DNA of 64,000 nucleotides from Monocercomonoides exilis PA203 (taxonomy: Eukaryota > Protista > Preaxostyla). The stretch spans positions 1,364,001-1,428,000 of the forward strand of contig LSRY02000013.1 in NCBI GenBank assembly GCA_001643675.2. The letters are read 5' to 3'. Below are positions 1-42,819 of this stretch, piece after piece (the first letter of the stretch is position 1; every line of letters begins with the position of its first letter). The notes under the pieces are model-generated. The model was given only the letters and a program-made list of their open reading frames with translations. It ran no database searches and was not told where the DNA came from. A program made the position numbers and the translations under genes.

Positions 1-55
1 TCGATTTGACTGAGTCACATTTTCGCGACTCAGTCAAATCAATCAAGTTCTACTA
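1..55. mobile_element. Right terminus of a TIR transposon continuing upstream of the window (DDE_Tnp_4-type end, element 0)
   Basis: Ends ...AAGTTCTAC-TA like the other DDE_Tnp_4-type ends. Carries a perfect 14-bp inverted pair GATTTGACTGAGTC (3-16) / GACTCAGTCAAATC (27-40), a variant of the TTGATTGAGTCAA subterminal motif. Confidence 0.6.
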
Positions 56-1049
56 GAACTAAAACGAAATTATTAAGTAATGCGGTATTAGCTTCGACTA
101 AGACCAAAAAGTGGTTTATAAAACCAAAAAGTGAGACTCAAAACCGTTTTGATTGAGTCAAGACCAATTGATTCATTTCTGGGTGCATGATCAATAGAAA
201 GTTACAAAAAATAAGTTGTTCATATCTTTCATTATTTAAAGAATAAATAATTAATTTTTCAGATAAATTATTATGTGAATGTTTTTTATAGAAAAAATTG
301 AAGTTTTTATGTTTTAACTATTTCAAAATTCGATATTCAACTTTATTTTTGAAAGAACAGAATGAACTTAAATAATAACCAGCACGTTTCATTCCTTTGA
401 CAATTTTTTTTTAATTCGATGTGTTCAAAATCAATGAACATGGAAATAAAAGAAATCCTAAACAGCTATTAAAAAATTCGAAAACAATAAATTCAAATAA
501 AGAATATAGCATTAAGTTCAAAGTTATCACAATTAATAAATATCAAAATCGTGACAGTCCTTTTTTAATGTAAAAATTCGCTTAAGTTTTAAAAAAAGCC
601 AAATAAAAATAAACAAACAACAAAAAAATTCATAAAAACAAAAATTAATTGCCAATCAAAGCATTGTAGAATTAATATTATAAAAATAACTATAAGAATG
701 ATTGTTTGCATGCATTATATGTTGCATTGAGTGTGTAACAACAGAAAAAACCAAAAGCTAAATATTCAACACATTGCACGTGAACATAAAAAAACTCATT
801 GTAAACATATTTAAAATATCATTATTATAAACACATCAAAAAGTTGCAAAAAACAAACTGCTCCGTTACGGAAAACACTAAAAACTTCAAAAAATTATGA
901 TCAAAATTGATATATAATTTTTGAATTTTTGATCACAAAAAAGATTGAGGGAAAACCGAATTGATTGAGTCAAAACCAATAAAACAAACAAATAACGTTT
1001 TAACTTTGTCAATTCAAATTGAGCCGCTCAATTCGTTTAAGGTCTACTA
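54..1049. mobile_element. Non-autonomous ~1-kb derivative of the DDE_Tnp_4 element family (element 1)
   Basis: 51-195 aligns with the left end of the element at 8621-8765, and ~897-1047 aligns with its right end ~10828-10978. Imperfect TIR TAGAACTAAAACGAAAT / ATTCGTTTAAGGTCTA. No internal ORF. Confidence 0.85.
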
Positions 1050-3420
1050 GAACTTATGCGATTTGAACTGGTCATATATTATTTGCCTTTGCTAAAGCAG
1101 ATAAGTTAAATATAATGCAAATTAGATCGAGACAAATCGATTTGATTGAGTCAATGCAAATTACTATAATTGTGGGTGGGAATATGATCGATAATAATTG
1201 TTATTAATGGGTGTTTTTGTATTTAACTTTTTTGAAACTTCATCATTCATGTCTCAATCTCCATTTTTCGATATTTTGAAGAGCGTGGAGAAAAGAAATG
1301 TGATGCCATCTCATGTGGAGATTAAATCTGATGATGATCAGCAATCAATCATCGATAAATTTTGTAAAAAATTTTCTGACCCATCTTTCGGTTTTCACCG
1401 ACTGACTGGGTTTGTTCGTTATGAATTCGACTTGCTTCTTCGTCTTCTCTCATCATCAGCCCAACCTCATCGTGGAAGGGCAAAATCAATCGAATCTTTG
1501 GATGAACAACTTTTTCTTTTGTTAGTTTTTCTTCACCACGGCTCCATTTCTTTAACTCACGTCATATCTCAATCAAAACACGAATCTCAAACATCAACTG
1601 TTCGACTTCTTCATTCAACAGCATCAAATTTAAAACCTCAACTTGCAAATCTTTTTCTTTCATTTCGTCCAGATCGATTAGAACAAATGAAGGAGGTGGG
1701 AATTGTGCTTGACTGCACAGTAATACCTACAAACAGGCCTGGAGGGAGGTTGGAGTTTGGAAAAAAATACTACTCAGGGAAGCATCACATCTATTGTGTC
1801 AAGGCGGAGGTGGGAGTGAACCCCAAGGTGGGGACAGCAAGTACAATCAGTTCTATCTACTCTGGGTCAACTCACGATTTCACTATTTTCAAAGAACATT
1901 ACCCCACATTTGTTCAAAAGCTTGGAGGAGCAAAGATTTTGGCCGATTCCGCTTTCATAGGAGCGAAACCAGAGCTTGGGGCGATTATTACAAAGCCCGT
2001 TGGAACTCCTGAGCTTGCATCTCATCGTGTTATTGTTGAAAGATTCTTTGGAAGGCTCAAAACTCTCTTTTCTGTCTTCCGTCATCCGTGGGTTTTTGAA
2101 ATGGAGCGTGTTGGGGACTATTTTTCAGTGGCTTGCTGCCTCACAAACTTTCATATCTTGCACAATCCACTCACAAATAAGGTTTTTGAAGCAAATTCAT
2201 TGTTTTTGGAGGAGTTATATTCGAATCACTTGAGAAAAGTTGATGCAAAGAAGGTTGCCAATGCTCGATATTTCGCCAAAATGAAAAATAAACTCAATCC
2301 AGAAAATACACTTACACCCACAATAACTACAATTTTGGCAGAAATTGGAGGCTTATCTTTCACTTTTTTACAATTATTTTTTATTTTCTTTCACTATTTT
2401 TTCGTTTTTATAAACATCATTTTACCATATTTTTTTATTTTAGATGCTTCTGATGATGATCTAAGGGCGTACGAAGCAGAAAAAGCGAAAGAAAGAAGAG
2501 AAAGAGCGAACAGCGAAGTTTCAGAACAAAGAAGCGAGCAAAAGGAACAGGTTTTGGAAAAAGAAAGAAATGATTTTGATGAAAATCAAAATTGTGATAA
2601 CTCACAAGCTTGGCACCTTCCGCAGCAATGGAAGTCGATAAGTATTTTTTCTCCATCTTCAACTCAACCTTTTCCTTCATTTTCACAATCACAACCTTCT
2701 TCTTCCTTTTCATCATCATCTTCATCATCTGCTTCTTCTTCCTCTTCTGTTGGTTCAAAACAAAATAAACCCCCATCTGTTCTTCAATCGTTGCAGAATA
2801 AAAAGTGATTATCATTTTATTTTTCTTTAACTTCTTTAAGCAACCATCTCATCTTTTTAATAATCTTAAATAATTGATATTTCCAATTCAAAATTTTTTT
2901 TTTGAATAAAAAACAAAAATTGTGTTCATCAATAAAATTTCTATATATTTTTTATTTTTCTATACAAAATATAGTAATAAAAATGAAATGAAACAAAAAA
3001 CCAACAATAACAAAAAAGTAAACAAAATTGGATCGAAAGAGCTTTTTGTTTTTCTGAAATACAGATATAAATTTTTTTCAACTGTGATCATCTCTTGCTC
3101 GTGTTTAAAACGCAAGTTTCAAATTGTTCATTATGATCCGAATCGGAAGAAGAGATGTAGAAAATAAACAATAAACACTTAAAACAATCAAAAAAAGAAT
3201 TCACAAACTTGTTGTATTTTAAAAATCTGCTGACAAGGAAGAGAGTTTGAAAAAATGAGTCAATATCTTGATCGTAATTGACTCATAATTGTTTTCAAAA
3301 AAGATCAAAAAATGATCTATTCAAATCAGTTTTGATTAAGTCAATTCAAATAAGATCGACTAAATGCAAATTGATTGAGTCAAATCAAAATTATGCACTC
3401 AATTCGAAAAAGTTCAACTA
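1048..3420 (+). mobile_element. PIF/Harbinger-ISL2EU-group DNA transposon (element 2)
   Basis: Imperfect TIR TAGAACTTATGCGATTT / AATTCGAAAAAGTTCAA. TTGATT(G/A)AGTCAA motifs at ~1142, ~3332, ~3371. Contains a transposase gene. Confidence 0.8.
1249..2808 (+). CDS. DDE_Tnp_4-family transposase; probable exons 1249-2350 and 2444-2808
   Basis: Motifs VLDCTVIP..RP, YYSGKH, GSTHD, ILADSAF, HRVIVERFFGRLK. Intron 2351-2443 (GC..AG) inferred from the same-position intron in the paralog at 8825. Confidence 0.88.
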   Translation: MSQSPFFDILKSVEKRNVMPSHVEIKSDDDQQSIIDKFCKKFSDPSFGFHRLTGFVRYEFDLLLRLLSSSAQPHRGRAKSIESLDEQLFLLLVFLHHGSISLTHVISQSKHESQTSTVRLLHSTASNLKPQLANLFLSFRPDRLEQMKEVGIVLDCTVIPTNRPGGRLEFGKKYYSGKHHIYCVKAEVGVNPKVGTASTISSIYSGSTHDFTIFKEHYPTFVQKLGGAKILADSAFIGAKPELGAIITKPVGTPELASHRVIVERFFGRLKTLFSVFRHPWVFEMERVGDYFSVACCLTNFHILHNPLTNKVFEANSLFLEELYSNHLRKVDAKKVANARYFAKMKNKLNPENTLTPTITTILAEIGGLSFTFLQLFFIFFHYFFVFINIILPYFFILDASDDDLRAYEAEKAKERRERANSEVSEQRSEQKEQVLEKERNDFDENQNCDNSQAWHLPQQWKSISIFSPSSTQPFPSFSQSQPSSSFSSSSSSSASSSSSVGSKQNKPPSVLQSLQNKK

Positions 3421-5071
3421 TAATGAGGGAGGAAACCAGGGCCGGGGAGGAAATCCGGGCCATTGATATTAAAATGGGAATTTTTTTATTTTTCCTTTTT
3501 TTGTGTTTGAATTTCGTTTCATGAATTGAAACAAAGAAAAACAGTAAAGATAAAGATATTTAACTATTCCAAAAAAGCTGTGCATTCCATAAAAGCTGCA
3601 ATGATATGGAATTAAAAATAAATAGTCTTCAGAACAAATCAGATAAATCATCAGAAGAATAATAAACAGCTCCAAATGAAGATCCCATTGGTGCAGATTT
3701 GGGTTCAACACCAGGTAATGCCCATTCTGGAGGATTATCAGGAAGATTTGATAAAATCTTCTCTGGGTTAAATGGCCATAACGTTGTGCTTTTCCAAGAA
3801 GATTTTATTGTTTCTGGATACGAAGCGGCTGCAAGTCCATTTCTTAGGATTTCCACAAAAATTTCTCTTTTTGAAGATGCTGAGGAAGTTGTTCCACTTT
3901 CTTTGGCTTTTCCAAACACCCTTTTCATACTTGCGAAGATGTATTGATCATTTGGCTGCAAAATGTGTGAAGTGTGCGATGGAAGTTTCACAAGATCAAT
4001 TAAATTATCCTTGCATAATTGAAGAATTTCAGGCTGAAAAGGTCCAACTCCACCATCCATAATGAGGACAGCATGCTTTTCTTTCTTTCCCACTGCAATT
4101 CTTTTATTTCTGATTTCTGTAATCACGCACTTTTTGAACAAGTCCAAAAAAATTGCTGATGAAACATGACCAGATAAAGAAGGAATGAACACTTCGTGTG
4201 AAGTTGTTCCCAGCTTGTATTCTTCTGGAAGTGTTGAAAATGGAATTAATATGGGTGTCAAATATCGACACCCGTCTGCACTTGTCATGAAGATAATTGA
4301 AGTGGAAGTTGGCAAGTGAACTTCAGGAACAACAGTAGAAGGCGTTGAGGATGAAGAAGCAACAAGTTCAGGTTGTTGTTTGGATGAAAAAGTGGAAGTT
4401 TCATCTAAGTTAAATAATAGCTGTGGAATTGGATTGACACTTTCAAACAATTTCTTCTCTTCGTCAAAGAAGGGGACGATTGTATATTTCGAAGTGTGGG
4501 CTGCTCTCCCTATAGGTAAAGCAATTGGCTTCGCAAGACTAATTTCAATATGCCTTTTCAAAAATCGTTTCACCCAATGTTTATCAACAGTTTTGACTTC
4601 ATCTCCTTCTTTTCTCTTTGTTTTTAGCAAATCATTAGCCTGAATAATAAAAAACAATTAAACTAATAATAATAAGCGAAATACAAACCATTTGTGTTAT
4701 TTCCATTTTTGAGTGAAACGTTCCATGCTCTGCATCATGAATTATCACTGTTGATAAATACTGTTCGTCCGAATTGTCAAATAGAGTTGGTCTTCCAGAT
4801 TTTCCAGGTGTATTCCTTTTTTTTTCTGCGGCGAGAGCTCTTTGCACTGAAGAGCGAGAAAGTACCTGGCTTCGGGAAATTTCTCTCGTTGGAATGTTCA
4901 TAATGTTGTGTAGGTAAATTGCCTTCAAGTGCGCATCTTCCAACTCACGAATTTCAGCAGTTGCACAAAGTCTTGATGCAGAATTAATTGTTTTTTTCAT
5001 TAGAGATCACAAAAATCAAACTATGGGTGAGGCCCGGGTTTCCTCTCTGGCCCGAGTTTCCTCCCCGACTA
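3421..5071 (-). mobile_element. pogo/Fot1-like DNA transposon (element 3)
   Basis: 41-bp TIRs 3421-3461 / 5031-5071 (8 mismatches, flanking TA included), each with two 18-bp GGGGAGGAAACCCGGGCC-like units. Confidence 0.88.
3629..5000 (-). CDS. pogo-like DDE_1 transposase (DD35D); exons 5000-4689 and 4639-3629
   Basis: N-terminal HTH-like region with GRPTLF, then FNLDETS, LIMDG, LPSHTSHILQPND with 35 residues between the 2nd and 3rd D. A 49-nt GT-AG phase-0 intron joins the two track ORFs. Confidence 0.9.
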
Positions 5072-5075
5072 TATA

Positions 5076-6965
5076 TAGTCTTTCAAATATCCGGACATTT
5101 TTAAAAAACCGAACATCAGATTTGCTTATGGGCATTCTGATTTGAAAATTACAATTCCAACTTTGTGTGATACTTTGGCTCGAAATATATTAAATAATGC
5201 AATTATTTTTACAAAGCATCTTTTCATAATCAAGAAAAAAAATATTAAAAAAAACATGTTTGTCAATATTTGTCAACAATTCAACTAAGTTTTTTTTATG
5301 TATGAAATGAAAAAAAAGATAAAGATAAATTAAAGTGTCATATATGAAGTTAATCCATTTGAAAATGGGGCAAATGGATCGGAAGATAAATAAATTCTTC
5401 CACTAAAAGATTCTTTTGTTTTATCCATTAAGAAAGGAGAAACAATAACATTGTCAGGTTTTGTTAATGGAAGGGAATCGCACACGAGTTTTTTGTTAAG
5501 TGGCCACATTCCTGAATCCCTCCAAGAAGCAATGACTGTTGCAGGGGACAACGCATGATACAATGCGATCTGCAGCCTCCTGATAAAATGTGTTCTTCTT
5601 CCTTCTGCTGAGTCAATGAAAACATCAGTGTCACTTTCTCCAAGCTTGCTTTTCAAATTCGCGTTAACATATTTGTCAAACGGTTGAATGAGATGAGATG
5701 AATGCGAAGGAGGAAGAGCCAAATCTTTTCTATGCTTTGATGCCAAACTAATTATGTTTGAAGTTACATGAGAATGAAGGGAGTCCATGTGAATTAACGC
5801 ATTTGCAAATTTTTCTGCAATTGAGCTTCTTCTGTATTCGATTGCTGGAATGATAGAATTAAGAAAAATGTATTCAAATCTTTCTTTAGTCATTGAAGCA
5901 GTTTCTGCAGGAATAATTAACAATTCTCGACTGTTTGCCATTTTGTATTCCTTTGGAACATCTTTGCCGGAAAATGTCATGCATGTCCTTTGGTGAGTTC
6001 CGTCTGCAGCAATTACTATCAATAACGATGTATTTTGGGGGTGCGATTGCTGCCTTTGCATTGGTGCAGGAGCATCAGTTGTCGTTATGACTTTAGGAAT
6101 TGTTCTCTCCTCGCTTGAAATGTAACATTCATCAAGATTGAACACGAGTTGTGGAAGATAATTATGATCATGATATAGTTTTTCCAATCGATCAAACCAT
6201 CTTCCAATACACTCTTGAGTGCTGTGAGCAATTCGTGCCGCTGGAATTTGAACAGGTGTTTTAAATAAGAGATCTTCGCTTTTTTTGATAACGTTGTAAG
6301 CCCAAGAGCGACAAACTGAATGGTCAATAATTTCCTCTTTTGGTTTATTTTGAATAAGGCTTGAAGCCTGAAAGATAATTATAAAAAAAAAACAATTTAA
6401 AAAAAAAAAAAAAAAAAAACAATTTTGTGACAATAAAAAACCTAAAACAAATAATAACCCAAACCAACAATCGAGCCTCCTTCATTGTTTTGTGTTTATT
6501 GTCCCTAGCGAAATTAGAAAGTTCTTCTTTGAATATTGCAGTTTTTTCTTTGTTCAAAGCAGGAGGTCTGCCTTTAACAAAGCAATCTCTCCCATCTTTG
6601 ACAGCTTCGATTGCTCTATTGAGAGCGCTTCTGTTTATTAATGCTGCCGAAACAATGATGCATTTCTTTATTCCATGATCAATATGTATGTGTGCGCATC
6701 TTTCAATTTTGTTTTCATAACGACTGTATTCTGCATCTTCAAGCAACTTAATAACTCTCGAAAAATCATCTAAATAATAATAATGAAGTTTCAAAGCAAA
6801 ACAAAATTCAAACCATCTCGATCTTCTTCCATGCTCATGGAAAACAAAACTTTTAATTGATCACAAAATTCCGAATAAATCAAAACAAAATCCAAATAAT
6901 GGAATAGATAATTTTAATCAGTATTCCCATTAAAAAAACAAATAACCGGTTAAATGAAAACCTTA
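5076..6965 (-). mobile_element. pogo/Fot1-like DNA transposon (element 4), degenerate TIRs
   Basis: Left end TAGTCTTTCAAATATCCGGACAT with an 18-bp tandem unit (5081-5098, 5099-5116). Weak inverse match at ~6940-6965. Bounded by the neighbouring elements. Confidence 0.75.
5330..6838 (-). CDS. pogo-like DDE_1 transposase (DD35D); exons 6838-6814, 6769-6465, 6367-5330
   Basis: GRPPAL, FNLDEC, IAADG, HMDS...PPSHSSHLIQPFD. Two GT-AG introns (6770-6813, 6368-6464) restore one frame. Confidence 0.87.
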
Positions 6966-8622
6966 GTCGGGGAGTTAACCCGCTCAGGGGAGTTAACACG
7001 CTCAGATGATCACAGAAGTCAGAACATTTTTCCTTCCGTAGTTTTCATTTTTCTCTTCGAAAACAAACAAAAATCGTTGGTTGTAACATTATAGTAGAAT
7101 GTTTGTGGAAAAAATCTAATAAAGGATGAAAAATAATTAAGAGAGGATAAAAAAATTGAAAAACTTTATCATATTCCAATATCAGACAAATCATCAGAAC
7201 TGAGCCAAATTTTCCCAGATATTGCTCCTTCCGGTGCCCTGTTTGATGATGAAGCAATTTCTGCCCATTCTGGAGGCTTCTCTGGCAGTTGAGCAAGAAC
7301 AGCATCTGGATTTAATGGATGAAGGCCTGTCACTCTCCAGCTGGCTTTAATTGTAGATGGAAACGAAGCCATTGCAATTGCTTCCTTTAAAACGGAAATA
7401 AATTCTTTTCTTCTTTCGCTAGTCGTGTTTGTTTTCCCACATTCAGTTGACTTTTTGAAACATTTTTTCATGTTGGCAAAAATGTACTGATCGTTGGGTT
7501 GCAGCAAGTGAGAGGTGTGCGAGGGGAGTTGGATAAGATCGATTAAATTATCTTTGCATAATTTAACGATCTCTGTGGAAAAATGCCCTGTCCCTCCATC
7601 CATCACCAAAGCCGCGTGATTGTGTTGCAGTCCTATGGCAATTCGCTTTTCGTTTATGCTCGGAAGGATTGCTTTTTGAAATACATCCAGAAAGCATGCT
7701 GTTGTCATGTGTCCAGTTGAACAAGGTATGAACACCTCATTTTCTGTTGTAGCTTCAACATATTCTTTTGGAATTGTCGAATATGGAATAAGAATTGGAG
7801 TTAAATATCTCACTCCATCTGCGCTTGTGAGAAAAACAATACAAGTTGAATTTGGCAACGAAGGCTCTGGAATGATTGGCTGAACTGAAGAAGAAGACGG
7901 AACCACGACATCTTCTGAAGATTTTGAAAATACAGTTGATGTTTCATCCAAATTGAACAACAATTGAGGTGCAATTTTCACTTCGGAAAAGAACTTTGCA
8001 ACTTTGTCAAAAAAGGGACCAATAGTTTGCTTCGAATTATGTGCAGCACGGCCTATTGGTAACTTTGTTGCTTTTTTCAGAGCAAGTTTCGGATATCTTT
8101 CAATAAATCTCTTTGGCCAGTGTTTGTCTACTGATTTGACTTCTTCTTCTTCAGTTCTTTTTTCTCTTCTTATTTCATTTGCCTACAAATAATAAAAAAT
8201 TAAAAATACAATAATTCGAATGCTAACAGACCATTTCCGCTATATCTCTCATTGAATGGAAAATTCCTTTCTCTGCATCGACTTCCAATCTGACAATTAA
8301 CCTTTTTTCGTCTGTTTTTGAAAAAAGAAAAGGTCTCCCGGGTTTTCCAACAACGCGATTTTCCTTTTGAGCTTTTTCAGCTCTTTTTAGAGAATGTCTG
8401 GAAATTATACTTGCTTGTTCAATTTCCGCCTTTTTGAATCCGCAAACAAGATGCAAGTGAAGACCTTTCTCGTGAGGAGTTTCCAGAAGCCTCGCTTCGC
8501 TGGATGCTGCAATTCTGTGGATCTCTTGCTCAATCTTTGACATTTTTTTCCAAACAAAAAATGGGTTGATTTTTGATCATCTGAGCGGGTTAACTCCCCT
8601 GAGCGGGTTAACTCCCCGACTA
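6964..8622 (-). mobile_element. pogo/Fot1-like DNA transposon (element 5), near-perfect TIRs
   Basis: 49-bp TIRs 6964-7012 / 8574-8622 (1 mismatch, TA included): TAGTCGGGGAGTTAACCCGCTCAGGGGAGTTAAC(A/C)CGCTCAGATGATCA. Confidence 0.93.
7169..8543 (-). CDS. pogo-like DDE_1 transposase (DD35D); exons 8543-8232 and 8182-7169
   Basis: GRPFLF, FNLDETS, TSADG, VMDG...LPSHTSHLLQPND. A 49-nt GT-AG intron at 8183-8231. Clear paralog of 3629-5000. Confidence 0.9.
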
Positions 8623-10980
8623 CTAGACCTTAAACGAAATTATTAAGTAATGCAGTATTAGCTTTGACTAATACCAAAAAGTGGCAATAAATACCTAAAA
8701 GATCGACTGAAAACCGATTTGATTAAATCATGACCAATTATACCAATTCTGGGTTTGTGATCGTTTTCAAGGAAATTTCAAAAAATGGGTTTGATCCATT
8801 TTATTGTTATTGATTATTTTTTTGATGTCACAAGAATCATTTTTGGAAATTCTGGAAAGCGTGGAAAAAAGAAACGCTATTCCAGAACACTTCGAATCAA
8901 CAAAAACTGATGATCACCCTTCTATTATCGACATTGCGTGCAAACGAGTGAACGATCCTTCTCATGCCTTCTTTAGGCTAACCGGATTCGTTCGTTCAGA
9001 GTTCGACTTTCTTCTTCATCTTCTTCCTGACGATGCTCTTCCTCGTAGAGGAAAAACAAAATCCATCGACACGTTAGAAGAACAACTTTTTCTTTTATTG
9101 AATGTTCTTCATCAAGGCTCCTGCACTTTAACACACACCATCGCATCACCAAAACTCGACTCACAAAGTGCGACAATTCGACTCCTTCACTCAACAACTT
9201 CTCGTCTAAAAGCTCCATTAGCTGATTTGTTTCTGTCATTTCGTCGTGACAGAATCGAATCAATGAAGGAAGTTGGCCTCGTAGTCGACTGCACCGTCAT
9301 TCCCACGAATAGGCCAGGAGGAAGGCTGGAATTCGGGAAAAAGTACTTCAGCGGAAAGCATCACATGTACTGTGTAAAAGCTGAAGTTGGGGTTAATCCC
9401 AGGATTGGGACTGCAAGCACGATAAGTTCAATATATACGGGATCAACGCACGATTTCACAATATTCAAAGACCACTACCCCCAATTTGTACCAAAGCTAG
9501 GTGGATCGAAGATTCTTGCAGACTCAGCCTACATCGGAGCGCGCCCAGATCTCGATGCAATTATCACCAAGCCTGTTGGCACACCCGAGCTGGCTACACA
9601 CAGAGTTATTGTGGAAAGATTCTTTGGTCGATTGAAAACTCTGTTTTCAATCTTTCGAAGACCATGGATATTTGAAGTTGAGAAGGTGTCAGACTATTTC
9701 TCAGTCGCGTGTTGCCTCACAAACTTCCACATTTTACAAAATCCATTAACAGCAGAAGATTCGGAGGCGAATTCAAGGTTTTTGGATGCTTTGAAAAGGG
9801 AATATTTGCGAAAGCAAGAAGCAAAGAGCATTGCCAACGAGAGATATATCGCAAAATTAAAGAATAAACTCAACCCCAGAGATTCACTTACACCCACAAT
9901 AACATCTTTATTAGCAGAAACGCCAAGTTTATTTTTCACATTTAACCCATTCTAACTTTCAATGATTGTTTTTTAACTTATTTTTTATTAAACATTTTTC
10001 CATAATATTTTTTTGAATATCAGATAATCACTCGAGTGCAACTTCAGCCGAATTAGCAGAAGAGAGAAGAAAAATAGAGCAAGATAGAATTTCCAAAGAA
10101 AGAGAACAGCAAAGATCAATTTCTATTGAAAAACAACGGGAACAAGATCGTTCTTCTTCGCAAACCAGAGATAATTCACTGTCTTGGCTGTTACCAAATC
10201 AATGGAAATCAGTGAAATCGTTTTTCAATCCAACAATACAACAATTTCCTGAATTTCCATCTCCCTCTTCATCGGCTTCCTCCTCCTCCTCTTCTTCTTC
10301 ATCAAAAGGTAACACGACTCAATCACCCCTACAAAATTTGTTAAGCAACAAACATTGAAATGCTTATTTTATCAATCACATGTCAATTTTTTCTCATTCA
10401 TTTAAGTATAATAATAATACAATAGAAATATTAAACATTTTATTTTTCAAATATTTCTGAGTGAAAATCAAATAAAATAAACAAAAAAATAGGTGATCCG
10501 TTGTTTTTCATAGAAAATCTTAGTGAAATGATAATGAAAAACAAAAAAACAATCATTTTTTGTGATTAACAATTTAACGAATGTTTTCTATTAATAATTC
10601 GAAAGATTATAAAGAAAACATTGTTAATCCTTCACGGTTAATGCGATCACTTCATATATCTTTAAAACAAACGAAAAAACTGACATTATAACTGAACAGA
10701 ACAAATAAAGTCGAAACATTATGTCACACCTGTAAATAGATGAGAATGAAAATATTATTGTTTATCCATGTTGTAAAAAATTTCAAAATGCTTCATTCGA
10801 AGTGAAACATCAAAAACAACAGAATTAATGATCAAAATTGATATATAATTTTTGTATTTTTGATCACAAAAAAGATTGAGGGAAAACCGAATTGATTGAG
10901 TAAAAACCAATAAAACAAACAAAAAACGTTTTGACTTAATCAATTCGAATTGACCCGCTCAATTCGTTTAAGGTCCACTA
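8621..10980 (+). mobile_element. PIF/Harbinger-ISL2EU-group DNA transposon (element 6), adjacent to the tRNA
   Basis: TIR core GACCTTAAACGAA (8626-8638) / TTCGTTTAAGGTC (10963-10975). Both ends are shared with element 1. Contains a transposase gene. Confidence 0.88.
8825..10358 (+). CDS. DDE_Tnp_4-family transposase; exons 8825-9926 and 10024-10358
   Basis: VVDCTVIP, YFSGKH, ILADSAY, RVIVERFFGRLK. GT-AG intron 9927-10023. Exon 2 encodes DNSLSWLLPNQWKS, matching DNSQAWHLPQQWKS of the first copy. Confidence 0.9.
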
Positions 10981-10984
10981 TATA

Positions 10985-11057
10985 GGCCTGATGGCTCAGT
11001 CGGCAGAGCGTGTGGCTGTTAACCACAAGGTCGGCGGTTCGAGCCCGCCTCGGGCCG
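10985..11057 (+). tRNA. trnN-GTT: tRNA-Asn (anticodon GTT)
   Basis: Full cloverleaf: acceptor GGCCTGA/TCGGGCC, D arm GCTC/GAGC, anticodon stem TGTGG/CCACA with CT-GTT-AA loop (GTT 11018-11020), T arm GGCGG-TTCGAGC-CCGCC. Confidence 0.97.
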
Positions 11058-22005: not shown

Positions 22006-24273
22006 ATGAAATTAAAGACGGAAATGCCGAAACAGTGCAAGAATATCAGAGAGGTGGTGAATTTGTTAGATCAAGAGAAGAAAACCCTTCAGGAAACCAC
22101 ACGGGATCGTGTGACGGAGATATCGATAGAAGATGTGCGACACGAGACAACGAGAACAGAAGGAGACTCCGCATATCCCCGAGTGACGAGACAGACGAGC
22201 GAGAGGAGGAACGAGAAGATAGTTTGGAGAGCTTCTGGGATTGTTATCGGGTCCCCAATTGGGAGCGCCCTGGAGGAGAGCTCGAAGACAGTTACTGCAG
22301 ATATTCTCGAAGGAGAAGAGGATACACAGATACAGTTTGGCCACAGGACGCCAGAAGTGAAGAGGAGCATAGCGAGTGGACCACCGAAGGAGCCACTTCC
22401 TGGGAGACTAGTGAACAGATTGAATGAGTGGAAGAAGATTTGGGGAGACAAACGAGTGAGCCGTGGTTTAAGAGCTCGATGGAAAAGCCTCCAGTCTCCA
22501 ATCTTTCTCAAGGAGAGAAAACACAGACAAGAGTTTCGGGGGACGACAGAGATGACGAACAATTATTTATCCCTCTTGGAGGAGGAGTTGAAGGATTGAG
22601 TGGTGAAGCCCATACAGAATTCGGAGGTGAAGTGGTTCAACCCGACATTCATGGTGATAAAGAAAAACGGAAAGTGGAGGAAGATCCTGGATTGCAGAGC
22701 TCTAAACGAGGAAGTGCAGGGAAAACACTTCAAAATGGATTTCCAGGAAACAGTGGTGGAACTCCTGGAGGAGAAAGACTGGATGACCACTTTGGATATA
22801 TCGAGTGCATACCAGCATGTAAAGGTGGACGAGCAATTCAGTCCCTATCTGTGCTTCAGCTTTCAAAGTCAATGCTATTCTTACGTAATGATGCAATTTG
22901 GAGCAAAGTACGCGCCCAGAGTATTCGCGAAGATAATGAGACGAGCAGCCTCGTTCATCAAAGAACAGTGGAAAGTGAAGCTAGTAATATATCTGGACGA
23001 CATTCTCCTCATGCATCCAGACAGGAATGCATTGAGATTGATCTCACAGGAGGTGGCCCAGTTCCTGAGAGATCTGGGCTGGATACTGTCGGAGGAGAAG
23101 CTGAAATTGGAACCCACAATGAGTGGGGAGTTTTTGGGATGGCTGTGGAATTCAGAGAAGATGGAAGTGACGCTCCAAGAGAGGAAGAGAGTGTTGCTCC
23201 TGGAGGATGTGCGAACCTGGATAACATATGCAAAGAGAAGGAAGAGACAAAAGACGAGAGACTTCGCAGCACTTATCTGGAGGCTGAACTTTGTGAGGCT
23301 GCAACACCCACCAGCGAGCTTGTGGATGACGCGCATGCAATGGCCCGCAGGGGCTGGAACGGAACTGTTATAGTCAACCCAATGCTGTTTGGGGAATTAA
23401 CATTTTGGAAGAAGATCCTGCAAGAGAACAGACCAAGGAGCCTGAGGGGAAGAGCAAGGCCAGCAGAGTTAATAACAGACGAGTCAGAGCTGGGATGGGG
23501 TGCAGCGCTGACAATATCGACAGAGAGCAGAGAGGAGAAGATTTATGTTCACGGAAGTTGGACCCTCCAGGAGAGCACGCTTGCAATCAACGAGAAGGAG
23601 TCCAGAGCAGTATTGAGGACTCTAGAAAGGAAAGGAGCATGGCTGCAACAACAGAAGATAGACCATATTCGTCTGAAGACAGACGACATGTCGACAAGAT
23701 GGACGATTCAGAAGAAAAGAGGAGCGCCATCGCTCATTCCAACACTGAGAGCATCAGAGAAGAAATTGATCAGCCTGGACATGACGATACAGACGGAACA
23801 TCTCCCTGGAGAACAGAACACGGAGGCAGATGCACTCAGCCGGATGGCGAGAAAGTGGCAGAGATATTGCAAATTATCGCACCTAGAACACTAGATATAA
23901 TTTCAGAACAGATAGCGCTGGTGCCCTGCGGAAGTACTTGGAGGCTATTCTCTCTGAGAGGGAGACAGAGAGAGAAACGTAAGGAAGAAAAGAAGTGTTG
24001 ATCCATCCGTTCCTGAGAAACATTGGACGGGTGCTGAAAGAGAAAATGAACGAATCTCAGAGGGAACTGACGATTCTGATTCTGCCAGCCTGGCGGGGGC
24101 AGACCTGGACCCCGCTACTGCAGCCAGGGCATTCGACAAAGACCCTAGTGACCTTTCAGGAGTGCATGATACCAGGAGCGAAGATGAGAAGGGAAGGATG
24201 GAAACCACCCCCAGGAGAGGTAATAAGCGTTTTACTGGAGAGGAAAATATTCCAGGAAGTGAACTCTTTTTAG
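22006..24273 (+). pseudogene. DIRS pol (RT, RNase H, methyltransferase-like), disrupted
   Basis: WRKILDCRALN, LDISSAYQHV, YLDDILL, FLG; RNase H TDESELGWGA, INEKE, HLPGEQNTEADALSR; MT-like ILPAWRGQTW. TGA at 22597, frameshift ~23340, deletion ~23850. Confidence 0.9.
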
Positions 24274-28621: not shown

Positions 28622-31600
28622 TCAGTTGGGAGTGTTTTGGCTGCTGATAAACGTTATTTCTGAAGAATCCAAAGATTCAGATTGCTCCTCTTTTGATTTT
28701 TCCTGAGATCCTTCTTGGTAGGTGACTGCATCAGACACTGTGAGAATCACAGCTCCAGCTGGGAATTTCTGGATGAATTCTCGTTTCAGATCACTCAGTG
28801 TTGGCCTTGCACTCTGTTTCTCACTCACCATCAATTTTATTAACTCACAAAAAGAAGAGCCACCAACTGCGGTCATATCTGTCCTCTCACCATTCACTAT
28901 CTTCTGCCCAGCCACATCTGCCTCATAATCACCAAACGGGATCTGGAGTGTCAGGCACTCCCACAGCATCATCCCGATCGAGAACACCACCGACTTCTTT
29001 GTTGCCCCCATGTTCTTGTTGATCAGCAGCTCTGGCGCCTTCCACCTCAAACACTCTTTTTTGAAGCTATCTTCATCCTCAAATGCTGATGAGGGAAGGG
29101 AGTCACTTTCATCATCATCATCACTGACAGATGTCACAACAGTTGATGATGAGATCGATGATGAATCAGAGTCATCTGATAAAAGGTCCGAATGCATGAC
29201 GATGCAGATCACCATGTGTTCTGAGAAGAGCACAATATGCGGACTCAAATTGGCAAGTGATTGGAGTGGATTTTCCATCCCATCGAAAGAGTGGAGAGCG
29301 AGATTTGCCACCCAGAACAGGATTTGGGCAGCTGTTTGCTCTCTTTGCTGAAGACTACTAATTTCCATCTCTTTCTTCTCATTTCTTCCGTGAAGCAGCA
29401 TGAAAAGCGAATCTCTCAAGTCAACAATAAGTTTTTCATGAGGCGATGAACAGGCCATCGCATCCACTAGATTCGACATCGATGAGGTGGTTGGGCACAG
29501 ATTCTCCGATCGAACAAATGTTGAATCTGAATCAGTTGTTGAAGTGGATGAAATAGATGAAATTGAAGGAGATGGTGTTCTCTTCCTTATCTCTTCTTCT
29601 TCCTCCTCAACTTTCTCCAATGCCCATTCTGGGATCTTGTCTGAATCTCTCCCCAGAATATATTCAGTTGAGCCACTCTCAGCCAGCAAATGCTCAGATG
29701 ACTCTGAATGAACCATCTCCTTTCCATTCATTCTCTTCTTGATCCTCTCTTCATTATTCTTCTCTGCCTCCCCCTCTGCTCTCCTCCACTGCTCCTCGGG
29801 CGACATCTCCATCGTCACCATTTCAATCAGTTTTGGATCTTTTCTCACTGTATCATTCACAATCTCTCTCAGCTCTTTGTTCTCATTCTTTGCCTTTCTC
29901 CATCTTACTGCAAGAATAACAGAAACAATAAGAACAATCAAAAACAGAACAACAAGGATGATAACAATGAGCAACCAATAAGATTTTCTTTCTTTTCCTC
30001 CTTCGGAAATCCTTTCATCTCCATTCACATTGGACTCACTTCTGTTTTTCAGTATCTGCGGAGAAGTCGCAACCAATTGTTTTCCAAACAGAATCATCAC
30101 AGATACCTCTGTTTCATTTGCAATCGTTGAAATATTTTCTGATGGAACTGTTCCAATCACTTCATCTTCAGATACAAAACTGTTTTCATCAAACTGATAT
30201 GTCTCAACCAACTCCACATCCCCTGTTTTGAATATCAATCTGAATGACAAATCACAAGGAAGATGAAGAGACCCCTTGAATTTCACAACAATGTTGCTGT
30301 CATTTTCAATGAGAGAGGCCTCTTCGAGTTTTGGAATGAAGAAAGATGATGATCCTTCAGCCGCTATCCCTCCAAGGGTGCATCCATCATTCAGAATCCA
30401 AAGCGAAGAATTGGGCATCACTCCATCTCCTCCTTTCAAACTCATCACATTCAATGCTCCAGAATCTGAGCAAATTATGTTTCGACGAAGTGATGGATAT
30501 CCTTCAATCGATGGATTGTTGTTCATTAACTCTCCTTTCTCAATCATCACATTTCCTCCACTCATTGTTATTCCACCTTCTGGTGAATTCGATATTGTTG
30601 TGTCTTTCATCATCAGTGAAGAATTCGCTGAATGAACAAGTGATCCACTCCATTTGCAAATTTCTTCAAAAGAATTAATTCTGTCGCTTTCCCTTTCTTT
30701 CTCAAGAACTCCAACGAATCGACACAACTCCAAAAAAACATTAGTTGAATTGCTCATCTGGATTACGCTCCCTTTGTCAGACAATGAAATACAATTCGTG
30801 CAAGTGCAGTTTGAAAGTGTTATTTGAGCAGAAGTTGAAGAAACAGAGAGAACAGAAGATCCTCCTGAATTCCTTGAACAGTTGTTGAATAAGGAGATTG
30901 TTATTGAAACAGATCCTGAATTCGAACCATGAATTGCAATGATGCAGCCCTCAGATAGCTCCACTTCATCAGCCACAACCCAATTAAATGCAACTTCTTT
31001 GCACTGCCCAATCTCAAATACATTTGATGTTGATTCAATCTGTTCCAGTCGGAAATTTGTGATGTTAATCTCATCTCCATTTAGTAGAAAAGCTGACTTC
31101 TTGAACGAAAGGAGTGACACTGAGCAGTTGTCAACATGAAGAATTCCATTTGCAATGCTCAGAAAAGTTGAGTTGAGAGCAACAGATGGAATGCTGTTTG
31201 ACTCTCCAGCAGAAGAGAAATCAACAATTGAAAGAGAAAGCTGTCCATTTGCTTCATGAATGATAGAACTTCCAGAATAACAAAATGACTGCCCAAAGTT
31301 GAATTTCAATCTCTCAAACCGAACATTCTCTGAGGTTGTGATAAGACTTCCCTCGTCTGTTATTGTTGAGCTCAGATGAACTGAAGCTACTGAGGGAGAT
31401 TGAAGTGAGCGGATGATCACATCCTTCGCTTCGCATTCTCCATTAATGATCGTCTCCTTTGAGACTAGCAGTTGAGAATATGATGAAGGAATGATGTGTT
31501 GCACTCCAACATCCATTGACTGACATGGCGCACTGAACTCTCCGCATTGCTTGCTGTCTGTGTGATTGTCTGCAACAGAAGACACAAATATCGTCTCACT

Positions 31601-34600
31601 CTGGTATCTCATAACCCTCAGCAGAAGATCTTCTTCATCCAGAAAGGAATCTGTTGTGCAGCCCCATATTGCCAGCTCCTTCACAAAAGGTGCTCTGAAA
31701 TCCAGCAAGAATTGCTCTTCAACAATCTGATTTTCGATTGAGTGGCATCTCACATACATATCTCTCCCTCTGAATGCAGAGTTGTCTTTGAATGTGATAT
31801 TTGAGAGAACAAAATTCAGAGGCTGCTCAACTGTCGAGATGCATTCCAGAAACAGCCACCCGCCTCTTCCTGTGGTTGAGCAGAAACACTCAGAAATCGT
31901 GCAAAATGAGCAATCAAATCTTCCTCCCTCATTCAACACACAAAACATCACTCCTCCTTTTCCGCACCTCGTTCCACCACATTTCTTCATCGTTGTGTTT
32001 CTTATCACCATTTTCAAAGGCTCATCATCATTGTCATTTTGGATGACTGGAATATCATTGGTTGTGTTTTGAGTGACTTCTTCGAATGAGCTCCACTCGA
32101 TAACAACATCTTGCTCCACTTCATTTTTTTCTCTCCTTGAACTCTTTGAAATGCTCAATCCGCTTGCTCCATCCAGCTCAACATTCTTCATCGTCAAGTT
32201 TTTAATGTTCAAAATCGTTGAAGATAACACAGAAATAACATCCTTTGAAAAAGATAGTAATTGCATTGTCACAAATTCCAATTGAACTGTTCCACCATCT
32301 GCCTTGATCAGCCTGTAGTTAATTATTTCTTCTCCGCTTTCTTCCATTTTAGTGAATGAGCAGTCTTTCAGAGTCAACAAGCCTTCGCTTGAATCAACAT
32401 GCATCAAAACGTTCATACGATTTTCAAATGATGTTGGGATCGCAAAGTCAATTAGTTCGAAATTGGTAATTCCCTGAATCTTCATTACAGCTTCATCTGT
32501 TCCTTCAAGTGATGAATAACATTCCAAAGAGCATTTATTTGTATCATCCGATTTTATTGAAATTCCACTGAGATCAACACTCTTCTGAAGAATTCCTTTT
32601 CCAATGATGGTTATATTCTTTTCATTTCCTCCTGGCAATCGATCCAATGAATAACCAATTGAAAGACAAGGATAATCTGAAAGTCCACAAATGCACACAT
32701 CTTTTCCATCACCTCCAATAAATATCTCTGAGCCAAATGTTCTCCAGAAATAGACCAATGGAATGGCATTCGTTGTGTCACTCCCATCAAAGCCTCTCAT
32801 GGAATTCAAGGAAATATTATCCAGATTCTCTGATACAAATGGAAGTGAGGTGTTTGTGATGCTCTTTGTCAAGTTGAATGCTTCAACGAAAAGATCATTT
32901 CCATATTTTGCAATATTTGGTTTTTCTAAATCAAAAACAGGTGATGAGATCACAAATGAAGAATAGTCATCAATCAGCTTCAGTGCCATCCCTCCACCAA
33001 AGCCAGTCTTCCCTTCTTCTCCAATTGGTGCTGAGCATTCTGTGAATGTGCATGAAATGACATTCATTTGAATGCTCCCTTTCAACTGAGCATTGATAGC
33101 CCCTCCTCTGCTTTCATCATCCAGCACAGAGCATTCATCAAAAATGCATTTTTCAATATTTATTTCACCATTTGAATTTTCATCGTTGCCATTATCAATG
33201 CTCACACAGCCTCCACTTCCAGCTGCTCTTTCTATTTCTGAAAAAGTGCAGTTCGTCATGTTCAACCATTTTATGCTCATTGACCCTGTACTTGTACTGC
33301 TTCCAGACAACGAGATCAATGGACTTCCACTCAAGTCAATCGATGAAGCAGAGAATTTGTCGATTATCAGGATCCCTGATTCAACTGATAAGAATAGAAA
33401 CGCCAATTCAGATAAAGGATTTTGAAGAGAAAGAGAACAATGAGACAAAGACAGTTGTGAAGATGATGAAATAAAAGTGGAATGCGATGAGAGAGAAGGA
33501 GGAAGAGAAAAGATGAGCTTTGATAATTCTGTTTCTATACTTGCTGTTATCATCGTTGAATTGGAAATTGAATTTGAATCAAAGACTGTCCAGCCACTTT
33601 GATTATCATTTCCTCTGATTTCATGCTTTTGTCCAGCAAAGGTCAATTCATCGCTCATCTGAATCATTCCACTCACAACAACTTTCTTTGTTCCTGTCAA
33701 CCGTGTGAGCGAATGTTTTATTGTCAAACAAGGGAATTGGGCTATTCCGCAATGCGTATGATCAGATGCCTCAGAATTGCTCACAAAGATTTCTTCTGGG
33801 GTGGGAAGGAGATAGATGCACAGAGGAATGGTCACACTCGTATTTCCATTGTCATATCCTCTCACTTTGTCAAATGAATCCAAAGAAGCTGTCACACACA
33901 AGATCTTTTTTGATTTTGCAGTCATTTCCAAATTGGGTGAAATGACAAAGATATCATTCCCCCATTTGGCTGTGTTTGTTCCGAATGAAGAAGAAATCAG
34001 GAAATTTGGATTTTCCTTTATCAGTCGAAGAAGGATTCCTCCCCCAAGACCATTGGAAGTTGAGCAATGGCACTCATCAAACGCCCCGCCTTCAACTTTC
34101 ACTTCATTCGCTTCTCCTGCACACAGCATCATCGATCCTCCATTTTCCGAACATGTGCTTCCACATCCTTCAAAGATGCAAGAATCCAGATCGATGTTTG
34201 CCTTATCGTTGGAAAACGACATCACTGCTGCTCCGCTGGTTGTTCTTTCAATCCCATCAAAGGTGCATTCTGATAGTGTCAATGAAATCTCATTTGTTGA
34301 AGAAAGCGAAATCAATGAATTTGTTGAAATTGTCTTTGCCCAATTCACATTTTCCATCTGCAACATCCCACTCTGAACATTAATAAGCTCAGTGGTGAAC
34401 ACTGTTTCTGATGATTGTCCACTTCCAGCAGATATGTTCAGTCTGCTCACATGCATCTCTCCTGCTCCTGTAATCTCAAACAGCCTTGACCCACGGTTAT
34501 TCTGATGAACCGAGTCATGCACAAGGATAATATCTCTGACTGTCAATGTTCCCACTGATACAGAAAAAAGAGACAATCCAGATGCTTCAAATTCTATTTG

Positions 34601-41976: not shown

Positions 41977-42819
41977 ATGCTCCCTAGCTCTCCACTCAGC
42001 ACTGGACCCGCGTTGAATTCTGCCACATCAATGATGTCAGATGGACCTCCGGGAGAGACGTTTTCGAGTGTGATTTCTCATTCCAGTTCTGAATTTGCCC
42101 AGCAGATCCCGGGAGCTTCAGAAGCGAAAATAAGCCATGGCGACGATTGTTTGCTGCTAGAAAATAGTTTTAAAACAATATTTCTCAGAGATCCGGACTG
42201 CAGCTTATATGATATGGATTTACCAGAAAGATATTTGGAAGATCTTATTACTGATTTGAAGGAAGATGATTTAAGTCCATTTCTGCCAAAGGCTCCTCCT
42301 ACAGCTTCGAGAACAGACAATTGGATGAACGACGCATTGGATAAGGCAGGTGAGCGAACTGAAGCATTTCTATATCCAGCCATTAAAATTCTGCTTTACA
42401 CACACGCGAAATTAAAAGAAAAAGATGACGAAAAAGGATCAATTGCAGATGCAATTTTATTAGTTTCAAAAGCGCTGAAGGAAGCAAGATCTGTAAGAAT
42501 TCAAGGAAGATTCGGCTTTAGGGCAGCTGCACAGATGAAGGAGAGCACAGCTTCCAGTCTTCTTACTCAAAGGCAATCAGAAGTTCTTGAAGAATGGAGA
42601 AAAACAGAGAAGAGTCAACAATTCAAGCTACAAACAACGAGCTGGCCTGTGAGAAGAAGTTCGATTAGAGCCAGAACAATTCCAACCAGAAGATCAGCTA
42701 GCCACAGATTTTTTCAAAGAGCTCCCCGGTTGTCAAGACAACAAAACCAAATCCGGCTGCGACCAAGTGCTTCAGGTTTCGCTTCAAGAAGACAATCAGG
42801 GGAGCGAAAATACCAATAG
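41977..42819 (+). CDS. DIRS gag-like ORF1
   Basis: 280-aa ORF directly after the left ITR, with an R-rich C-terminus containing an RFF motif. Confidence 0.7.
   Translation: MLPSSPLSTGPALNSATSMMSDGPPGETFSSVISHSSSEFAQQIPGASEAKISHGDDCLLLENSFKTIFLRDPDCSLYDMDLPERYLEDLITDLKEDDLSPFLPKAPPTASRTDNWMNDALDKAGERTEAFLYPAIKILLYTHAKLKEKDDEKGSIADAILLVSKALKEARSVRIQGRFGFRAAAQMKESTASSLLTQRQSEVLEEWRKTEKSQQFKLQTTSWPVRRSSIRARTIPTRRSASHRFFQRAPRLSRQQNQIRLRPSASGFASRRQSGERKYQ

Follow-up and report, generated by a model that had tools for sequence, protein, structure and literature searches.

The window analysed here, a stretch of 64,000 nucleotides (nt) from the genome of the mitochondrion-less protist Monocercomonoides exilis PA203, opens with a stack of DNA transposons docked against a tRNA gene. 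Seven elements with terminal inverted repeats (TIRs) follow one another in an unbroken series over positions 1-10984 and end 8 nt 5' of a tRNA-Asn(GTT) gene, which has a run of T residues (terminator) directly 3' of it. Element boundaries were drawn from the sequence itself, from repeats, Pfam matches and genome copies, and from alignment of the termini. Four of the elements (A, B, C and G) are PIF/Harbinger-like (DDE_Tnp_4) and three (D, E and F) are pogo-like (DDE_1) (Table 1). A preceding sequence-only reading had proposed that at least seven DNA transposons of two superfamilies lie docked 5' of tRNA-Asn, and this is borne out by the count of seven, by Pfam, and by ARAGORN and Rfam. Its further statement that every base from 1 to 10984 belongs to a TIR element needs amending: there is indeed no host spacer, but 34 nt are repeated target-site duplications. 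The stack goes on to the left of the window, where a pogo terminus lies at C7:1361366.

Table 1. Elements, spacers and anchor gene of the stack, in window coordinates.
Feature	Position	Strand	Basis or remark
A, right end of Harbinger-type element	1..51	+	runs past the window's left edge
Spacer ACT, one target-site duplication copy common to A and B	52..54	.	sequence
B, 991-bp non-autonomous derivative of the G family, resembling a miniature inverted-repeat transposable element (MITE)	55..1045	+	ends match G
Spacer ACT common to B and C	1046..1048	.	sequence
C, autonomous PIF/Harbinger-like, one transposase gene (1198-2808) with in-frame intron	1049..3416	+	DDE_Tnp_4, E = 3e-20
Spacer ACT-A-TA, duplication of C plus TA of D	3417..3422	.	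terminus alignment
D, pogo-like, two-exon transposase (exon 1 4638-5000, exon 2 3632-4639)	3423..5069	-	DDE_1 and HTH_Tnp_Tc5
Spacer TATATATA	5070..5077	.	sequence, terminus alignment
E, divergent pogo-like	5078..6963	-	DDE_1, E = 4e-5
Spacer TA common to E and F	6964..6965	.	terminus alignment
F, young pogo element, annotated protein MONOS_9883	6966..8620	-	DDE_1, E = 1e-12
Spacer T-ACT, TA of F overlapping ACT of G	8621..8624	.	terminus alignment
G, autonomous PIF/Harbinger-like (exon 1 within 8804-9955, exon 2 about 10023-10358)	8625..10976	+	DDE_Tnp_4, E = 2.6e-20
Spacer ACTATATA = ACT-ATATA, last 8 nt before the tRNA, ACT at -8 to -6	10977..10984	.	sequence
tRNA-Asn(GTT), stack anchor	10985..11057	+	ARAGORN; Rfam RF00005, 67.1 bits

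The stack contains intact transposases of two superfamilies

Intact two-exon genes are present in C and G (DDE_Tnp_4, PF13359) and in D, E and F (DDE_1, PF03184). All three DDE_1 matches, including that of D at 4e-9, lie over the curated cut-off, and the same result is found in the precomputed Pfam annotation of P0001, the annotated M. exilis protein MONOS_9883, which is 100% identical to that of F. The HTH_Tnp_Tc5 domain is present in D and in the relatives P0004, P0008 and P0013; in E and F no match to it reached the Pfam thresholds used. C and G each have one long sense open reading frame (ORF), their other ORFs being short and antisense, with no second Myb/SANT-like gene, and we therefore name them PIF/Harbinger-like (PHIS) and not typical Harbinger elements. 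Their target-site duplication is 3 bp long and has the sequence ANT, not the TTA or TAA of the classical TWA. Homologues of the transposases were sought exon by exon (exon 2 of F, exon 1 of G), and the matches are annotated M. exilis proteins.

Copies elsewhere in the genome define the individual elements further. The ends of C, D, E, F and G are backed by full-length copies (89-98% identity for C, D and E) terminating at identical positions. Element A extends more than 600 bp further upstream, as seen at locus L029, and its type of terminus, followed by AAT and 2-4 nt, adjoins tRNA-Gln, tRNA-Thr, tRNA-His and tRNA-Arg genes elsewhere. The ends of B match those of G at 80% (5') and 93% (3'), and the 3' end of B has 38 genomic copies. 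For C, at least 11 full-length copies of 89-98% identity terminate at identical bases. D has TIRs matching at 31 of 40 positions, and a copy at 95% identity adjoins tRNA-Asp on contig C37. The TIR of E is weak, and both of its boundaries are backed by full-length copies at 89-95% (contigs C63, C18 and C22); loose ends of other E copies run into a tRNA-Leu/Ser-like 5' end. F has a TIR match of 39/40 with inverted repeats of 49 nt that are 98% complementary, together with nine near-full copies at 88-98%, and its copies on contigs C15, C47 and C50 directly adjoin tRNAs. With the reading frames of C, D, E, F and G intact and close copies present, these families look recently active.

We also considered whether the tRNA might be part of a transposon. 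This was ruled out, since G (which has a 94% full-length copy with another 3' flank on contig C62) and other families carry different flanks elsewhere.

Junctions consist of repeated target-site duplications

Read in order, the spacers (ACT, ACT, ACTATA, TATATATA, TA, TACT and ACTATATA) are made up entirely of ACT or TA units. Harbinger-type junctions are single shared ACT trinucleotides. That these elements generate a 3-bp ANT duplication can be seen in more than 10 copies flanked by ATT...ATT or ACT...ACT: G and B have the latter, and B/G-family copies that stand alone in unique DNA the former. The duplication of the pogo-type elements is TA, as seen on both sides of F, at a MITE on contig C25 and at a copy on contig C23. 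The sequence-only reading had taken all junctions to be TA, which is correct for the pogo-type elements, whereas the Harbinger-type duplication is a 3-bp ANT (ACT in this stack), as the solo ATT...ATT copies prove.

As had also been claimed, no element is nested in another anywhere in the window stack. The stack holds 588 TA and 1124 ANT sites, and all later insertions used the 34 bases of the spacers. With so many sites left unused, the complete lack of nesting is far beyond chance. It follows from the junctions that, under the duplication rules, the stack can be reduced to one ancestral segment of about 19 nt, ACT-(TA)n-ACT-ATATA, immediately 5' of tRNA-Asn, and that each insertion fell within this segment or within a duplicated copy of its target. 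Outside the window, nested or rearranged copies do exist: a copy of F at C18:1296109-1298011 is interrupted, its two parts overlapping by about 30 nt in the query and lying about 216 bp apart.

Transposon termini lie just upstream of tRNA genes across the genome

The M. exilis PA203 assembly, produced from Oxford Nanopore Technologies (ONT) reads (read N50 8.9 kb) with Canu, comprises 82,301,135 bp in 101 contigs (PMC8767320). We scanned the whole of this 82.3-Mb assembly with exact patterns, using reversed patterns as a control. A pogo end followed by TA, 7-19 nt and a tRNA A-box gave 10 matches (control 0), and with the B-box as anchor a pogo end plus TA gave 12 matches, 2-8 nt upstream of tRNAs (control 0). 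Within 30 nt downstream of tRNAs there were no pogo ends (control 0), so that the polarity is strict, at 12 upstream against 0 downstream. The 9-nt pogo terminus CCCCGACTA occurs in 80 exact copies, 12 of which (15%) thus sit in a tRNA 5' target of roughly 2 kb in 82 Mb. For the Harbinger-type elements, an end followed by ANT and an A-box gave 17 matches (control 1), and a looser, B-box-anchored pattern gave 31, about 23 of them visibly tRNAs (control 16). Separately, the reversal of CCCCGACTA occurs 494 times genome-wide against 80 for CCCCGACTA itself, which suggests a strong depletion of CG-containing words or a repeat carrying the reversed word.

Comparison of coordinates shows that 15 or more of the 63 best-scoring tRNA genes carry an insertion. 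Termini lie within 12 nt 5' of about 35-39 tRNA genes. At least 15 tRNA species are hit, among them Asn, Asp, Glu, Gln (two anticodons), Thr (two), Val (two), Lys, His, Pro (two), Gly, Trp, Arg, Tyr and Leu. The duplicated target stops 2-9 nt before the mature 5' end, and the insertions lie outside intact, high-scoring tRNA genes. Within 35 loci scanned with Rfam there was no 5S, U6 or 7SL gene. Both superfamilies thus have termini 2-12 nt upstream of many different tRNA genes genome-wide. The refuting case named with the sequence-only reading, copies scattered at random and unlinked to RNA polymerase III (Pol III) genes or to each other's ends, was not the pattern found; most other copies adjoin the end of another element.

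A sample drawn blind to transposons gave a similar picture. Starting from the 21 tRNA genes ranked highest by Infernal, or 18 independent loci once three near-identical duplicates were dropped, it covered about 8.4 kb of upstream DNA, and a transposon terminus lay within 12 nt upstream of 6 of the 21 genes (4 of the 18 loci). These were a pogo MITE at tRNA-Thr(CGT), an A-type end at tRNA-Gln, a third type of terminus (GTGTG...) at tRNA-Lys(CTT) and a decayed Harbinger-type end at another tRNA-Lys. A clean single insertion, on contig C25, reads host DNA, TA, a 690-bp pogo MITE, TA, GAT and then tRNA-Thr, 3 nt away.

The third terminus, TA followed by GTGTG..., exists in two subfamilies and lies 8 nt upstream of tRNA-Lys(CTT) at L013 and L014 (C21:1279470 and C26:8111). 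Elsewhere it adjoins Harbinger-type ends (flanks of L035, L036 and L028).

The orientation of elements varies, both within stacks and with respect to the tRNA. A uniform orientation of elements toward the tRNA was ruled out: F meets tRNAs by either end (C15 and C50 versus C47), as do C-type elements (C22:1111242 versus contig C45), and contig C11 has head-to-head and tail-to-tail MITE pairs. Any orientation bias toward the tRNA is at most weak.

Empty tRNA 5' flanks (for example L001-L005, L010, L012 and L015) carry a T-rich tract and then CAA(C/G)AA just before +1, which is probably the Pol III start-site motif of M. exilis. CAA motifs of this kind are similar to the start-site motifs of plant tRNA genes. 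For many of the "empty" genes (L001-L016), repeats of about 270 bp to 1 kb are found within 0.1-1.5 kb upstream; these repeats may be the decayed remains of older stack members, or may belong to additional targeted families.

Stacks recur at other tRNA genes

Comparable stacks reach tens of kb, as on contig C11 between divergent tRNA-Glu and tRNA-Thr genes, at C62:194-244 kb and on contig C22. All stacks with a visible end finish at the 5' side of a tRNA: the one in the window and those on C33 (Trp), C37 (Asp), C11 (Glu and Thr), C56 and C23. The surroundings of 30 copies of the B/G 3' end differ: a tRNA is the immediate neighbour of 3, a fourth takes second place in a stack that finishes at tRNA-Trp, and about 18 adjoin the terminus of another element.

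Two observations concern duplication of such sequences. An identical B/G-type MITE with ATT flanks lies inside three copies of another repeat (C20:64431, C42:662194 and C42:681371), where it is a passenger copied with that repeat, not the product of three insertions. In addition, some tRNA genes with identical junctions are paired, in inverted or direct arrangement, at distances from a few hundred bases up to 20 kb (C23:301591/321436, C37:337618/338344, C91:1075291/1077328/1239807, C21:1309956/1315192 and C45:89520/97693), the pair on C23 having about 4 kb in common at 98.7% identity. It seems that stacks favour the segmental duplication of tRNA genes, often in palindromic form.

Elsewhere in the window, three further notable ORFs lie at 42767-46081 (+), 22428-23894 (+) and 28622-36409 (-). 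One window ORF, of 1104 amino acids, has a Phage_integrase (tyrosine recombinase) domain and is Crypton/DIRS-like, another has the RNase H domain of a reverse transcriptase, and a third, of 2595 amino acids, has a partial tyrosine-kinase-like domain; kinase genes that overlap "unclassified repeats" are described in the M. exilis genome paper.

Proposed integration by position relative to tRNA genes

These data lead us to propose, with a probability of roughly 78%, that pogo-like (TA) and PIF/Harbinger-like (ANT) families in M. exilis select integration sites according to where these lie with respect to tRNA genes. The choice of site is positional, polar, independent of tRNA species and common to two superfamilies with different duplications. 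The target TA or ANT lies at about -2 to -12 of the mature tRNA 5' end, on the 5' side only; in the ancestral Asn site as reconstructed, the range extends to about -19. This interval coincides with the usual position of the Pol III start.

How a stack grows follows from the junctions. Each insertion restores the target on the tRNA side and leaves only a few bases between element and tRNA, so that the next is forced into these remnant bases or into the duplicated TA or ACT; later insertions then give base-perfect, gap-free stacks with spacers made of repeated duplications. The landmark may be the Pol III pre-initiation complex (TFIIIB, TFIIIC and Pol III) on the internal promoter, as for Ty3 of yeast, and it could be recognised through a tether on the transposase or through bent, nucleosome-free DNA at the start site. 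Alternatively, open DNA bent by TFIIIB might simply be the preferred substrate of DDE enzymes in this host. The sequence-only reading's picture of new insertions pushing older ones away fits every junction; as a history it is unproven, and nearest-copy identity shows no matching gradient (see below).

Two conserved motifs offer leads, and only leads, to a tether. Members of the M. exilis pogo clade (P0001, P0003, P0004, P0010 and P0011) have a C-terminal LPxxP(E/Q)WA insertion and a terminal (Y/L)SSDD, which are common to pogo lineages 33-57% identical to one another and absent from three outgroup proteins; in the window, the region encoding them lies at 7172-7330 and 3632-3790 (-). In C and G, W-LP-QWKS is conserved in tails that are otherwise of low complexity. 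Judged from these sequences, LPxxP(E/Q)WA ... SSDD (pogo) and W-LP-QWKS (Harbinger) are candidate tether motifs.

As tRNA promoters are internal and intergenic DNA is short, the 5' flank of a tRNA gene would be a safe haven, and the earlier suggestion that both families use this flank is supported by the termini found upstream of many tRNA genes genome-wide. On balance we lean towards the view that two superfamilies (possibly with a third, GTGTG) independently gained, in an oxymonad, Ty3-like integration at Pol III start sites, by C-terminal tethers or through TFIIIB-deformed DNA, which would be a first for DNA transposons. The habit does not appear general to these superfamilies: no tRNA was found at 63 metagenomic loci encoding distant DDE_Tnp_4 or DDE_1 relatives (26-43% identity), a weak negative, the contigs being short.

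Evidence against positional targeting, and alternative explanations

Several observations count against targeting by position. About 6-9 of the 30 B/G-family MITE copies are solo at ATT sites in unique AT-rich DNA, so targeting, though strong, is not absolute. Several of the tRNA junctions are duplicated segments and not independent events (the pairs on contigs C23, C37, C91, C21 and C45). No empty allele or polymorphism was seen. Nor does identity to the nearest copy show a gradient from young proximal to old distal elements (C 98%, D 95%, E 95%, F 98%, G 94%), this identity being a poor proxy for insertion age. Short Logan contigs from one sample split at every repeat junction and leave the array unbridged, neither confirming nor contradicting it. 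We infer the tether and the dependence on Pol III, and place the start site from position and the CAA motif only. Finally, the majority of copies adjoin other elements, with the end of most such stacks out of view, and certain junction pairs recur at other loci (E next to F, pogo next to C-type), as a preference for element ends would also explain.

This last point leads to the view that the elements target TA or ACT beside the ends of resident elements, tRNA genes being occasional seeds or bystanders. The 18 or so end-to-end junctions against 3 direct tRNA contacts among the 30 G/B-family ends are in keeping with it, as is the finding that Harbinger-type insertions use an ACT composed of the terminal AC of a pogo element and the T of its TA (contigs C23 and C12). 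However, only 2-12 nt of target are left after a first insertion, and positional targeting therefore predicts end-to-end junctions anyway; moreover, single elements lie between host DNA and a tRNA (contig C25), roughly 35-39 tRNA genes carry a terminus within 12 nt, the polarity is strict, and every stack with a visible end stops at the 5' side of a tRNA. We consider a preference for element ends unlikely. Very improbable, in our judgement, is random insertion at TA or ANT followed by purifying selection that, in a gene-dense genome, spares harmless copies at tRNA flanks. Intergenic stretches in this compact genome average 870 bp (PMC6759080), and solo copies in unique AT-rich DNA do occur, but selection cannot yield a 10-nt window or a 5' polarity of 12 to 0, nor can it yield the sevenfold reuse of a few bases while the TA and ANT sites of neutral transposon DNA stay unused.

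Recognition of a DNA sequence, in the manner of Dada, that happens to precede tRNA genes or to lie in their first bases would account for the T-rich tract and CAA(C/G)AA shared by empty tRNA genes, and for the many insertions directly 5' of such a motif (TCAACAA, TATGCAA, CCGACAA). Yet other insertions lie at sites free of the motif (GAT, GA, GTG, AT, ATATA), the distance ranges from 2 to 9 nt, the 5' sequences of the tRNAs differ across at least 15 species, and two unrelated superfamilies with different duplications use one window, all of which makes this equally hard to credit. An assembly artefact, in which repeats have been concatenated, is unlikely in the extreme. The region consists entirely of repeats, and short-read contigs break at each junction; against this, the assembly is a polished ONT assembly whose read N50 of 8.9 kb (PMC8767320) compares with elements of only 1-2.4 kb, the junctions follow duplication rules, and the same architecture appears on many contigs with different element orders, orientations and tRNAs. 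Positional targeting accordingly remains the reading we prefer.

Significance and comparison with known systems

Targeting by a Pol III tether is a textbook form of accommodation between transposon and host, known from the retroelements Ty1, Ty3 and Dictyostelium TRE, DGLT-A and Skipper. No description of pogo or Harbinger elements lying 5' of tRNA genes turned up in a literature search that left most subscription journals outside its reach, and transposons linked to tRNA genes go unmentioned in the M. exilis genome papers. The earlier of these lists 153 tRNA genes and leaves transposons unmentioned (PMC6759080); the later attributes 4.5% of the assembly to DNA transposons and 35% to unclassified repeats, without mention of tRNA (PMC8767320). 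Allowing for a report that may already exist, Pol III-directed integration by cut-and-paste elements would thus be new, the habit having been known essentially only for retrotransposons. Such targeting would also explain a sizeable share of the M. exilis repeat landscape, in which tRNA genes are separated by stacks of 10-50 kb. If shown for ordinary pogo and PIF/Harbinger-type transposases, such targeting would extend convergence on a 10-nt tRNA flank to class II elements. It would also provide simple systems of a single protein for working out how the Pol III complex is read by a DDE transposase, and would suggest natural scaffolds, compact and made of one protein, for delivering genes to safe harbours.

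The nearest known counterpart is Ty3 of Saccharomyces cerevisiae. Whatever the tRNA species, this element inserts at the Pol III start site, 0-20 bp 5' of the gene, via TFIIIB and TFIIIC (PMC7175516). Both systems use a window of a few bases, defined by position and not by sequence, on the 5' side only of a gene with an internal promoter. Ty3, however, is a retroelement with an integrase, and in vitro work has established that it depends on TFIIIB and TFIIIC, whereas the M. exilis elements move by cut-and-paste with DDE transposases, duplicate TA or ANT, and have only a presumed link to Pol III factors. In Dictyostelium, unrelated families of the TRE5-A, DGLT-A and Skipper type have likewise converged on tRNA flanks as safe havens in the compact genome of a protist (PMC5911963); all of these are retrotransposons, their distances are larger and family-specific (tens of bp), and base-perfect stacks are unreported.

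Among DNA transposons, reviews name Dada as the sole tRNA-linked elements, with Pokey and CryptonV as other target-specific ones (PMC6719617, PMC8869645, PMC3706591). Dada elements of fish and other animals are tied to tRNA and other small-RNA genes (PMC3706591, PMC8869645), but they belong to another superfamily and insert inside the RNA gene at one defined sequence, disrupting it, each lineage being sequence-specific for one RNA species; the M. exilis elements lie outside the gene, at many tRNA species. That our elements might themselves be Dada was ruled out by their insertion outside intact tRNA genes and by their DDE_1 and DDE_Tnp_4 transposases. Pokey, a piggyBac element of Daphnia, similarly moves by cut-and-paste and is restricted to a region of multicopy RNA genes (PMC8869645, PMC6719617), yet its target is a specific TTAA within the 28S rRNA gene, and it has no Pol III link. 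With ordinary pogo/Tigger and PIF/Harbinger elements, the M. exilis families share their domains (DDE_1 with a helix-turn-helix of CENP-B/Tc5 type; DDE_Tnp_4), TIRs and TA or 3-bp duplications. They differ from them in that no regional target beyond the duplicated bases has been reported for the ordinary elements, in the ANT in place of TWA and the lack of a second Myb-like gene in the Harbinger-like families, and in the clade-specific PEWA insertion near the C-terminus of the pogo transposases.

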